From assembly GCF_001194135.2 (NCBI RefSeq), contig NC_069000.1, positions 14,356,456 to 14,420,455 on the forward strand: a DNA stretch of 64,000 nucleotides. The letters run 5' to 3'. The notes under the pieces were generated by a model, which was not told where the DNA came from, did not search any database, and saw only the letters and a list, made by a program, of their open reading frames with translations. This DNA is from Octopus bimaculoides. Its lineage: Eukaryota. Both the position numbers and the translations under genes were made by a program. Shown here piece after piece: positions 44,401 through 53,400 of this stretch (position 1 is its first letter; the number at the start of each line of letters is the position of its first letter).

Positions 44401-47400
44401 TGAACTGGAGCAATGTGAAATAAAATGTCTTGCTCAAGACCACAGCACCACAGCCCAGTCTGAGAATCAAACTCAGTACCTCATGACTGTGAGCCCAATA
44501 CTCTAACCACTGAGCCATGCACCTTCACATGTTGATAATATGACAATAATGATGAACAAAAACTAAATTGTTTGAAGCGTAGTAATTTATCAAAACAAAT
44601 GTGTTTGTTGAATCAAATTATGGTATCTTTTAGTGTGAAGTTAGTTGTTTAGAGTTACGATACAGAGCTACTGACAGGATATGCACCATCAGTGTTTCAG
44701 TTGATTGCTCATTACCTTCTGAACTCATTGCAAAGTAGAGTTTGTTGATCTTATTACCTCTTACCATATTTTCTGGCTTTCCAGTCAACGTTCAAACATC
44801 TTTACTATCTTTCCAAATCCTACTGCATTTCACATGGAATTTTTGATTTTCCAAAGTTGTCTTGGTGTGTATGTTAGCTTAACCTTTTGGTCTGAAAAAT
44901 TTGATTTATATGCTGGAAAATACAGCAGGGAGGTATCATAAAACCAGTCTTTTATTTCATACACTCTGTTATATATCTGATTATCATTCTGCAAGAAACA
45001 TTGTATTCTCATAGAGAAAGATGTATATAGTTTGGATAAGTTATCAGTTTTTTTTCTCTTTAGCAGTGTGTAATGTGACTAATACAGAGTTGAAGCTGTT
45101 GTTCTTTTAACTTAGATTTCTAGCTGTCCATTTTCTTTATTCACATTTTAACCATAATTTCTGTAATACTTCAAATTGTAATAACGCAATAAATTCCATT
45201 ACTTGAGCAAGCAGGCCAAACCCGCCTTATTCTAATGGGACTCCACTTTAAAAATCACTTTTTTTTGTAATTTCTGTTTGTTGTGTGCTGTAATATTTTT
45301 GAGAAATCGAGGTGGTGAGCTGGCAGAAATGTTAGCATGCTGGCCAAAATGGTTAGTGGCATTTCGTCTGTCTTTATGATGTGAGTTCAAATGCTACCAA
45401 TGTCAACTCATTTCTTGTGTCAATAAAATAAGGACTAGTTGAGCACTGGGTTGATGTAATCGACTTAGGCTCCCCACCACCCAATAGCTGGTCTTGTGCC
45501 AAAATTTGAAACTAATGTTATTATTATTCTTTGTTAAGGCAGTGAGCTGGCAGAATCATTAGCATGCCGGACAAGATGCTTAATGACATTTCGTCCATCT
45601 CAGAACGTAGAGTGCAAATTCCCCCGAGGTTGACTTTTGCCTTTCATCCTTTTGGGTTTGATCAAATAAGTACCAGTTGATCACTGGGGTTGTTGTAATC
45701 AACTCAACTCCTTACCATGAAATTACTGGCCTTGTGCCAAAATTTGAAACCAATATTATTATTATTCATTGCTTCAGTTATATTAAAAGTGCTACATTTA
45801 GTTTGGATAAAGAGCCTTCATAAAAAAGCGGAAAAGCTTTTAGATTTGTACTATAATTGAAATTTTCTTTGTTGGTGTTTCATATTAATTGTTTTATTTT
45901 TTGTTGTAGGTAGTGCTGCAAATCCATTAAGTCCTGGTGGAAGTACAGTACCCTTTGAAAATGTAGCATTGTCATCAGTAAGCCAAGATGAAGAAGATTG
46001 TTCTTCAGTGAAAGAAGGTGCTTTGAAGAGATCAAGAAAGATGTGTGCTATATGTGGAGACAAGATTGGAGTCTTCCCATTTTTGGGTGTGCCATGTTGC
46101 ACTGGTTGTCGTAAATTCTACACACTTAATGCTAGAAGGAAAAAAAATCCACACAGTTGTAAGAAATCAGGTAATATTCATGTATTGGAAACTTACTCCC
46201 CATTATTTTAATTTTATATTGTATTTGAGGGACAATAGGGTTGCTGCATTTAGAGGTTTGTTATTGGACTGACACAGTTTAACAATGTGCATTAATAAAT
46301 TACTAAACCATAAAAATTCTGCTTCAGATAGCTTCTGTCTATGCCATACTTGCATGGAAATGCAGATGTTAAATTGATGTATATATGACCAGATTCTGCA
46401 AAGCTTCTAAGTCAAAGAAATCTCGCTCGTCAGGTCAACCTAATATTATAATAGAAGACACTTGCTTAAGTTGTGCTGTGGGATTGAACTTAGAACCACT
46501 TGATTAGAAAGCCATAATTTTTAATCTTGTGATTGTGAAGTAAAATAAATGCTGACCAACCATATTATAATAGGAAATAGGGTTTTAATGTTGGCTCTGT
46601 GTATGAGAAGTTATTTTCTTTAAACTATAATATTAGATTTTAATTAAAAGAGGTTACCTTGCTTTGGAAATTGTGTATATATGTATGATGTTACTTAGTA
46701 TTTAATTGGTATTTTTTCTTCAGGGAACTGTTCTATAACTCGGTTAACCAAATCTCAGTGCAATGCTTGCCGTTTACGTCGATGTAAAGAGATTTTCCCC
46801 AGTGACATTGATGCAGTTACTCTTGCAAGCAGTGAAAAGCAATTATCTGATAATGATTTGGTGTTCTCTCCGGCAAAAAGATCCTCACCCTCAGTGAAAA
46901 AAGGAGAGGGAATATCATCTACTGCAGTTAGCTGCGAGGAAGCAGATTTTGTTCAGTTAATGTCACCAAAAAATAAGCAAAATAATCGCAGGAGTAGACG
47001 AACAAAAGGTAATTGTTTAAGCAATTAATATTTTTATTATTATTTTTTAGTTCTGCAGCAGTTCCTACCATTACAGTTACTAAACCCTTTGTCGGATGGA
47101 GGTGTCTGTTCATCAGATACAACCTGTAATCAACTTTAAGCTGTTCAGCATTTGTTAAAATATTTGCTATTATGCTGTTTGATATTGCTGCTTAAAATTT
47201 TCGTATATGAAATTGCTAATATATGATGAGTTTTAAAACTTTTATTCATTTTATAAAATATTTCAACTTGTTTAAAAGTGAACTAGCAAAATTTTACTGT
47301 TTATAAACAATAAACTTGTATTAGTTGTTTAGACTTTCAACAACTGGAACAATTATGATCAGATCTTTATAAGGCATAAAAATGTTTCTATTCTTAGATA

Positions 47401-50400: not shown

Positions 50401-53400
50401 TTTATGGAAGACCATTAGTTGCCCATGCATACCAACCTCCCCTCTCTATGCCATTGATGTTGTCCAAGGGAAAGGCAAAGGCCGATACAACTTGGCACCA
50501 GTAACTTCACAACTCATTTCTACAGCTGAGTGAACTGGAGCAACGTGAAATAAAGTGTTTTGCTCAAGAATACAACACACAGTCCAGTCCGGGAATTGAA
50601 CTCACTACCTAATGATTGTGAGCCTGATAGGAATTGAACTCATAACCTTATGGTTGTGAGCCCAATGCTCTAACCACTGAGCCATGCACCTTCACATAAA
50701 TTGTATTATGATAATAGTAACAGTAATGGTTTCAAATTTTGGTCTTGGTTAGTTATTTTAGGGTATTGGGGTCGGGTTAGTTGCATGATTAAATATTTTA
50801 TAATTTAAGTTTATGCAATTTTGAAATAACTAAGGATTGAAATTTGAGTTTCATATATATTTGAGAGAATTAGTAAAGTTCATTGATTAGTTGTCATGTT
50901 GAATCCATACAACCTCTTGTAAGAATCAACTCAATTTTCTGAATGCTTACCTAGCATTGCATAACAATCGAGCTTGCTGGATTTCTTTTACTATGATAAT
51001 TTGATTGTAATGGAATCTTGAGAGACCAAAAATAATTTGACTAAACTGAGAAAGCAGATTATTGTGACTTATTTATCAACAACCAGAAAGTATAAAAATA
51101 CCTATATTCGACTTGATTGGGTTTTAATTGATTTTTAAAATCTTTTCTTCTGTCTTTACGTTCTGAGTTCAAATTCCACTAGGGTTGACTTTACCTTTCA
51201 TTCTTTCAGGGTCAATAAAATAAGTACTAGTTGAACACAGGTCGATGAAATCGACTTATCCCCTTCCCAAAATTACTGGCCTTGTGTTAAAATTTGAAAC
51301 CAATATTTTTTTGTCTTTATTGTTCTTAGTTCGTCAGTTATAATTATAACCTCTTCTAGTCTAGTAATTTGCTTTTATGAATTTTTTTTCTCTCTCTATA
51401 TTGGACTGTTTAGTTAAAAAAATAGATGAGATGCATTTAAAAATAATTATGTGTCTTTTTTCAGTAATCGACGTTGTAAATTCCCACGCTATACAAAATT
51501 CGCAACAAATTCTTTCATCACACCCAAAAAAGAGAGTTCTGAGAACAAAGTTGATTCAGATGCACAATGCAACATATCATCAAACAGCCAACGATGTCAC
51601 CGAAGGGGAGCTGGAAGTGGTGGCAGTGGTGGTGGACAGCTAGACAGTGGCACTTCTCCAGGGTATCACCCCAAACTCAGCAAACCTAATGTTAAACTAA
51701 AGAGACAGTTTCTTTTTCAACAACTGAAGAAAAGGACCAAAGAAAAGGTGAGGATAAAAAGTATAACTGTCTTTAGGAATAAATTTCATTAAAAAAAAAA
51801 AAAGTAATAAAAATGCTCCTTGTACAAAACTATTGTTTTCAATTTAATATTATTTACCAAAACAGATATTTCTACTGCAAGAAAAATATTGTTAGTGTAC
51901 TTTTTTCTCATGATCTTAGCTTAATATAAATTTGAGTAATGTTTCTCTGTCTGTTACGTTTGGTGCAAGGACAGTGAAACTCAAGTCAGCAACTCTCATA
52001 ATCCTAGGGAATGTCCTAAGGGAGTCTGTTTTTTTAAGGGCCACCTAATTTGAGCCCCACTGACCGCCCCCTATTTTATTGCATTTGGCGACCAAATCGG
52101 AGCAATGATAATGAATTTCATACCATGAACTCCCAGGGAGTATTGTAAGGAGGTTCAATTTCTGAAGGGCTGCTTAAACGGGGCCCCACTGACTCCTCTA
52201 TTTTTACTGCATTTACCTTGCTCCTACACTTATTGATTAAACTATGATCAGCATCAGTGCTTAGCACATTCACAGAAATAAGTTTGGGCATTCTAAATAC
52301 TTTCACGTGCAAATCGAGATAAAGAGTTATAACAGGTACGTTTCATGTGTGGTAGTGTGGATATTTATATTTTGTAGTTTATGAAACTTAGGTCTAGGTG
52401 GAAAACTAATCTTCCTGTTCCAGTTACATATTGGTGCTTGGGCCTTCAGCCCCAGAGTTCTAGAGTTTTTTCTACCTGAATACCCTACAAAATTCCCAAA
52501 AGCCCTCCTTAGGAGCTTGCATGAATGCCACCTGAAGAGCGGCTTCAAGGCTAGAAACTTAGCTGTAATTCAAACTAGAAACTAGCTGTATATCTATCAG
52601 CAAAGCTGGCAGAAAGTGCGTGTATATATATATATATATATATATATNNNNNNNNNNNNNNNNNNNNNNNNNNNNNNNNNNNNNNNNNNNNNNNNNNNNN
52701 NNNNNNNNNNNNNNNNNNNNNNNNNNNNNNNNNNNNNNNNNNNNNNNNNNNNNNNNNNNNNNNNNNNNNNNNNNNNNNNNNNNNNNNNNNNNNNNNNNNN
52801 NNNNNNNNTATATATAAAATATAGCATTTTTTTGGTTGTTTGTGTGTGTGTGTGTGTGTGTGTGTGTGTGTTTCTGTATGTCTTTCAACATATAGACAAG
52901 GCAACACAGACTTAAAAAAATATATCCTTTCACTTTGAATAATGTCTGAAGGTACACGCATGATCAACAAATAGTTTTACCAGCAGTGCAGCAACAGTTA
53001 AAGACTTAGTTTTTATGAAAAGATTTCATGTTGTTTCAAAGAAAATTTATTCTAATATTTTTGACTCCTTTATTTAATTGAACCTCATTGTGTGGAGCTG
53101 TAAATGTGTGAATGTCCTTTCTGCTAGGCAGTGACCCTCTATGGCAAGTCTACGGATTCTGTGAACATGTACGTTCAAGCACCACCAATGTTTTCAGGAG
53201 CAGCTGGGTTTTTGAGCTCAAAGAATCTTGAACATATTGCAATGCGCAAATGGACTAGTCAGGATTACATGTACTCTCCAACAGCATACCGTATCAAGGT
53301 TGATTATAAGGTAAGATTTCATTCATTATTTTTGAAAGCTTACTCAGGCCTTTAAATTTTTTTACTTGTTTCAGCCTCGATGGGTTTAGTCAAACAAATG

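Follow-up and report, generated by a model that had tools for sequence, protein, structure and literature searches.

The trithorax/KMT2 family raises the question of whether the two DNA-binding fingers that are described from different animals can occur together in one protein. Trithorax (Trx) of the fly is without a CXXC domain (PMC6647185) and has a variant nuclear receptor (NR)-type DNA-binding domain, according to the passage of that article that cites Stassen 1995, and it is listed as NR0A5 in the NR0A class of proteins with a DNA-binding domain (DBD) only (PMC7827873). Reviews of human KMT2A and KMT2B name AT hooks, CXXC, PHD, bromodomain, FYR and SET, and an NR finger is not on the list (PMC5870349). 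The planarian protein SMED-MLL1/2 has a CXXC domain and PHD fingers and is reported to be without the nuclear-hormone-receptor-type domain of Trx and without a bromodomain (PMC3549883), and a deep conservation of ZF-CXXC proteins in general across metazoans has been described (PMC8286816). In reviews the NR finger figures as something peculiar to Trx of the fly, whereas MLL1/2 targeting by a CXXC finger is treated as the vertebrate or planarian mode. Here we analyze a stretch of 64,000 nucleotides from the octopus Octopus bimaculoides (contig NC_069000.1, positions 14,356,456 to 14,420,455 of the forward strand; “the window” in the following, with coordinates counted from its first nucleotide), in which a sequence-only reading had noticed a trithorax gene that appeared to carry both fingers. 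The premises which that reading had called established, namely vertebrate KMT2A/B with CXXC and no NR finger and fly Trx the reverse, match the published descriptions (PMC5870349, PMC6647185, PMC7827873).

Both fingers are present in one KMT2A/B/Trx reading frame, at a level well beyond chance. Exons 3 to 7 on the + strand, from 45910 or 45914 to 51747, have AG and GT at each junction and join into a frame free of stop codons, with the first cysteine codon (TGT) of the NR finger at 46044 and the last cysteine of the CXXC finger at 51475-51477. With the curated gathering thresholds of Pfam as cut-offs, the zf-C4 profile (PF00105; cut-off 21.1) reached 39.3-47.8 bits. Its E-value was 9e-11 in a 371 amino acid (aa) segment, 2e-12 when the domain was searched by itself and 9e-10 in a 2157-aa model of the protein. 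The zf-CXXC profile (PF02008; cut-off 26.5) reached 45.6-48.6 bits (E 8e-13 and 7e-12). Between the two fingers lie 128 aa, and 194 aa separate their starts. The sequence-only reading had reported cysteine patterns of the zf-C4 type and of the CXXC type in this interval, and both were found where it had placed them, in an open frame. Its numbering of the exons, 3-4 for the one finger and 5-7 for the other, agrees with our 16-exon model, its distance of about 180 aa is a fair approximation, and the Pfam search that it had proposed for the spliced protein returned both domains above cut-off. The exons concerned are the following.

45910-46170 (acceptor 45910 or 45914), + strand: exon 3, first NR-type finger with its recognition helix, CAICGDKIGVFPFLGVPCCTGCRKFYTLNARRKKNPHSCKKSG; zf-C4 matches from 46038 onward.
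46724-47008, + strand: exon 4, rest of the second NR-type finger (NCSITRLTKSQCNACRLRRC), where the zf-C4 match ends at 46791, followed by a serine-rich basic linker; 285 nucleotides (nt), phase 1-1.
47398-47635, + strand: exon 5, a linker, then the basic run RRRRK, then the six leading CXXC cysteines (CKQCEGCLADDCGVCVYCL); the zf-CXXC match starts at 47562.
49761-49808, + strand: exon 6, a 48-nt micro-exon, DKPKYGGKNVIKQAC, with the KFGG-type loop and the KQ pair for CpG contact.
51465-51747, + strand: exon 7, final CXXC cysteine (INRRC), with the zf-CXXC match running to 51477, then a basic linker.

Since exons 2-7 all lie on a stretch that is free of assembly gaps (34319-52647), it is unlikely that an assembly misjoin has placed foreign NR exons into a trx intron.

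The gene to which these exons belong is a trithorax/KMT2A/KMT2B orthologue, predicted to encode an H3K4 methyltransferase of the MLL1/2 type that acts in COMPASS-like complexes, and the window contains its 5' half. The 16-exon model runs on the + strand from 32250 to 63203 and comprises 2157 open codons with AG and GT at all boundaries, and Pfam finds zf-C4, zf-CXXC and three PHD domains in it. The region from PHD3 into the bromodomain matches human MLL1 (3lqh) with an E-value of 4e-32 over 96 residues, and when the PHD1-3 region was compared with a large protein collection the top relatives were vertebrate KMT2A/2B fragments with 52-60% identity, all of them 410 aa or shorter. Its cluster of PHD1-3 and a bromodomain of the MLL1 type places the predicted protein in the KMT2A/KMT2B/Trx subfamily. 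The gene extends beyond the 3' end of the window (64000), the last recognizable exons being the start of the ePHD region. The remaining parts of the model are listed below.

32250-32417, + strand: exon 1, start codon, MARPRFPGRPG..., 56 codons, GT donor.
38162-40365, + strand: exon 2, large, basic and serine-rich, containing RGRGRPS, which resembles an AT hook; it may end at 40328 or at 40365; 768-codon open frame.
55386-55496, 56108-56245, 57268-57360, 57716-57836, 58702-58815 and 59283-59494, + strand: exons 8-13, PHD1-3 and the start of the bromodomain.
59632-61650, 62627-62734 and 63132-63203, + strand: exons 14-16, a Ser/Thr-rich insert and the remaining bromodomain region.
Past 63203, + strand: further exons, e.g. 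DMLPNAVLPPSGDHIYAQW from 63619, with which the gene leaves the window.

The N-terminus encoded by exon 1 (MARPRFPGRPGCRYER..., 32250-32417) is like the high-affinity menin-binding motif of human MLL1 (RWRFPARPG), and this suggests that the menin interaction may be conserved in this invertebrate; a search of PDB sequences with the N-terminal motif gave no match. The AT-hook-like RGRGRPS in exon 2 likewise resembles the N-terminus of MLL1. Exon 14 (59632-61650) is a 673-codon Ser/Thr-rich exon of low complexity that lies within the bromodomain region, between the part next to PHD3 and the part with KINKLHYQSV, and the insert is far larger than in human MLL1.

Turning to the NR-type finger, exon 3 encodes, up to 46170, the peptide KRSRKMCAICGDKIGVFPFLGVPCCTGCRKFYTLNARRKKNPHSCKKSG with CAIC-X14-CTGC, followed by RKFYTLNARRKKNPHSCKKSG, and exon 4 continues with NCSITRLTKSQCNACRLRRCKEIF, so that C-X5-C-X9-C-X2-C-X4-C is read across the junction; the first loop counts as X14, and as X13 should the leading cysteine of a CC pair be the ligand. 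The finger aligns over 68 residues with the DNA-binding domains of TR-beta (3m9e), Rev-erb (1a6y), RAR (1dsz) and VDR at E-values of about 1e-10. It shares with these canonical domains the double C4 treble-clef with its eight zinc cysteines, the 5-residue D-box (C-KKSGN-C) and the trailing CRLRRC (CRxxxC), and probably folds. The finger leads in frame into the CXXC finger and the PHD fingers, and no ligand-binding domain (PF00104) was matched by Pfam in the 2157-aa model. Inspection by eye of the + strand translations between 44 and 53 kb for a nested NR ligand-binding domain revealed no long open frames besides the exons; these translations were not run against Pfam. Because the model is without a ligand-binding domain and its frame runs on into the CXXC finger, the octopus finger is a variant with a DBD only, like the NR0A class.

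The CXXC finger is divided between CKQCEGC-LADD-CGVCVYCL in exon 5, DKPKYGGKNVIKQAC in exon 6 and INRRC in exon 7. Its closest solved relatives are those of human KMT2A (E 7e-14) and KMT2B (E 2e-12). All eight zinc cysteines, forming two CxxCxxC clusters and two distal cysteines, align with the MLL1 CXXC domain, as do KPKYGG with KPKFGG (F changed to Y) and IKQ with KKQ. The differences from MLL1 are an inter-cluster loop that is one residue shorter (LADD versus QVPED) and an alanine in place of C1188. By its cysteines, its score above the Pfam threshold, its KFGG-type loop and its (K/R)Q dipeptide the finger belongs with the type-1 ZF-CXXC domains. The KQ pair contacts the CpG in the DNA complexes of MLL1 and CFP1, and with the zinc cysteines, the K(Y)GG and the KQ pair all kept, the octopus finger is likely to bind unmethylated CpG.

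The composition of the locus offers a context for such binding, with one feature of its own at the 5' end:

31000-33000, no strand assigned: 5' region that is not CpG-depleted, covering the presumed promoter and exon 1, with a CpG observed/expected ratio of 0.9-1.35.

Across the gene body (35000-64000) the ratio falls to 0.1-0.5, with 0.30 for introns and 0.53 for exons. This profile is the pattern expected under mosaic gene-body methylation, and the gene bodies are probably methylated. With a CpG-rich 5' end set against a depleted gene body, a CXXC finger would have something to discriminate. Upstream of the gene, the intergenic stretches at 13-20 kb and 24-25 kb also have ratios near 0.7-1.0.

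Put together, the above points to an N-terminal chromatin-targeting region in which an N-terminus resembling the menin motif, an AT-hook-like motif, a DBD-only NR finger, a CXXC finger and PHD1-3 with a bromodomain are carried in one frame. The CXXC finger would read unmethylated CpG as in human KMT2A/B, and in a genome with CpG-depleted, probably methylated gene bodies it would guide the enzyme to promoters without CpG depletion. The NR-type finger would be a folded two-zinc module whose recognition helix has diverged from all canonical P-boxes, most likely serving as an auxiliary contact to nucleic acid or protein that raises avidity beside the CXXC finger, the AT hook and PHD3, and it is probably not a reader of a classical hormone-response half-site.

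Compared with the relatives introduced above, the octopus protein has the same order of AT-hook, CXXC, PHD and bromodomain as human KMT2A and KMT2B but differs from what the reviews list for them by an NR finger upstream of the CXXC. With Drosophila Trx it shares a DBD-only variant NR-type finger N-terminal to the PHD cluster, whereas the complete CXXC finger is found only on the octopus side of this comparison. Planarian SMED-MLL1/2 is likewise a KMT2A/B/Trx orthologue from the spiralian side with CXXC and PHD fingers, but the NR-type domain and the bromodomain of the octopus protein are both reported to be absent from it. Full-text literature searches found no Trx/KMT2 protein for which zf-C4 and zf-CXXC are both described, and trithorax does not come up in surveys of the nuclear receptors of oyster, Biomphalaria/Lottia, Lymnaea, flatworms, Daphnia and Nematostella. 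When the segment from the NR finger to the CXXC finger was used in a word-indexed protein search, only two short CXXC fragments from ENA and one HNF-4 were returned and no Trx, from a collection that holds no full-length KMT2/Trx proteins. An exhaustive HMMER search with the peptide of the exon for the first finger against 1.84 billion representatives, again a collection without full-length KMT2/Trx, gave four weak matches that resemble canonical or multi-DBD nuclear receptors, none of them Trx-like. Among these weak matches is a protein of 907 aa (P0022) that is unrelated to Trx and has four tandem divergent NR-type DBDs (CLVCGDKFFGRRFGV...CRLQKC). A contig that codes for one of the two ENA CXXC fragments has no NR finger upstream, which is uninformative, and a scan of metagenome contigs found five CXXC loci (four with 62-64% GC, one with 53.5%), an NR-type finger in none of them, and none evidently an animal Trx. 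The architecture may already be on display where the domains of invertebrate proteomes are annotated automatically, in which case our contribution is one of interpretation and not of discovery.

Several points count against this picture, and in this and the following paragraph they are weighed together with rival explanations. The recognition helix (CTGCRKFYTLNARRKK) departs from the canonical NR DBDs: the P-box reads CTGCRK versus CEGCKG/A/S or CGSCKV, the FF(K/R)R behind it is replaced by FYTL (CTGCRKFYTL in place of CEGCKGFFRR for the helix), and one extra residue is inserted ahead of the third cysteine. At the positions of E203, K206, K210 and R211, the base contacts of the estrogen receptor DBD, helix 1 has T, R, T and L. 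Of the four canonical base contacts three are thus altered, which leaves DNA binding by the NR finger in question and makes the reading of an AGGTCA-type half-site unlikely. It is quite possible, if short of probable, that the finger is a zinc-stabilized module for binding protein or RNA and does not bind DNA, leaving the CXXC finger as the sole true DNA reader. We know of no DNA motif reported for the finger of fly Trx, which is in line with such a role, and to our knowledge the function of the Trx NR finger is uncharacterized. Speaking for nucleic acid, the helix and the C-terminal extension are still strongly basic (RKFYTLNARRKKNPH), KRSRK precedes the domain, and the residues that determine the fold are intact; the basic surroundings would suit some form of nucleic-acid binding, with a protein-binding role as a live rival. 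Of the dual DNA-reading module that had been proposed from the sequence, the CpG-reading half is likely, given the residues that the CXXC finger keeps, while sequence-specific targeting by the NR finger is not established. The same proposal held that flies and vertebrates had lost the fingers reciprocally, which is partly supported. The CXXC finger is present in vertebrates, planarian and octopus, and on this ground its ancestral status and its loss in the fly lineage are well supported. Loss of an NR finger in vertebrates is not established, and it is not distinguishable from vertebrates never having had one. Parsimony would place both domains in the protostome ancestor, and the NR finger, being found in both fly and octopus, is probably at least that old and would later have been lost in planarians, but only if the fly finger, compared here by its published description, is homologous and the animal is a lophotrochozoan. 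We consider it unlikely that the stronger version holds in full, in which NR and CXXC fingers form an ancestral, undescribed targeting module of Trx/KMT2A-B in protostomes and possibly bilaterians, the NR finger reads a specific motif, sequence-specific recruitment is joined to a sensor for unmethylated CpG, and no more than a part of this was kept in each of flies, planarians and vertebrates. Also unlikely is that no ancestral dual module existed and that the finger was captured in this lineage by exon shuffling of an NR DBD, independently of the one in the fly. Phase-1 introns may lie on both sides of the module, as is classically seen where a module has been shuffled. Among solved structures it is closest to NR1-type DBDs (TR, Rev-erb, RAR), and the planarian orthologue is reported to be without it (PMC3549883). 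Like the fly finger, however, it is a divergent variant without a ligand-binding domain, and two captures at one place in one gene would be unparsimonious. In fly Trx, too, the finger would lie N-terminal to the PHD cluster, and this shared placement we count against independent capture.

The remaining difficulties concern the gene model, which is read from genomic DNA alone, so that inclusion of exons 3-4 in the mRNA is predicted; the taspase site and the FYRN, FYRC and SET/post-SET domains of the subfamily would fall outside the window. The junction between exons 2 and 3 is ambiguous, since it may join a phase-1 donor (e.g. 40328) to 45910, or 40365 to 45914, and of these acceptors the one at 45910 has the better polypyrimidine tract. 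If this acceptor is used, phase 1-1 applies to exon 3 (261 nt) as well as to exon 4 (285 nt), and they could be skipped in frame, exon 5 being entered in phase 1. An argument that skipping of exons 3-4 would shift the frame was dropped, as the 45910 acceptor makes both exons symmetric. The NR exons could then be an optional, isoform-specific cassette, or disused relics, with the main form of Trx carrying the CXXC finger only, as in vertebrates. This is the explanation to which we give the least credence. The symmetry of the two exons, either or both of which may be lost with the frame retained, speaks in its favour, as does an exon 2 that has no strong donor and several possible phase-1 donors; but long open frames have been kept (116 codons for exon 3 and 109 for exon 4) in DNA of 33% GC, and so have canonical splice sites and all zinc ligands, whereas decay would be expected of an exon out of use. 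Purifying selection is also suggested by the Pfam E-values, which range from 1e-10 to 1e-12. On the strength of the intact open frames and zinc ligands we regard exons 3-4 as probably in use, and return to a single predicted protein carrying both fingers.

The rest of the window contains repeats and some further features. One family of interspersed repeats, about 300-400 bp long and with 76-98% identity between copies, is found upstream of the gene and in the trx introns (22495-22766, 22876-23033, 44205-44530 and 50290-50700, with partial copies at 8405-8552, 23253-23364 and 43937-44000). A second, short interspersed repeat with 71-80% identity occurs at 45315-45770, 51165-51310, 6418-6571 and 62378-62537, some copies being inverted, and two of the copies lie directly upstream of exon 3 and exon 7. 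At 9761-11273 a cluster of open frames on the + strand, one of them with a CCHC knuckle-like CYSCQKVGHKSSYC, points to a retroelement that has decayed upstream of the gene. At 918-1557, 7026-7516, 24185-24524 and 61917-62205 there are long tracts of microsatellite or low-complexity sequence of the (TA/CA)n and (CT)n type. Eight assembly gaps (N runs) interrupt the window, and the one at 12883-13796 is the largest.

If one orthologue indeed carries both fingers, the NR finger and the CXXC finger are not alternatives within the Trx/KMT2 family. The NR finger of the fly would then predate the split between ecdysozoans and lophotrochozoans, and the loss of the CXXC finger in the fly would be a derived simplification. 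The octopus gene would in that case offer a natural system for asking what role the NR finger of Trx plays.

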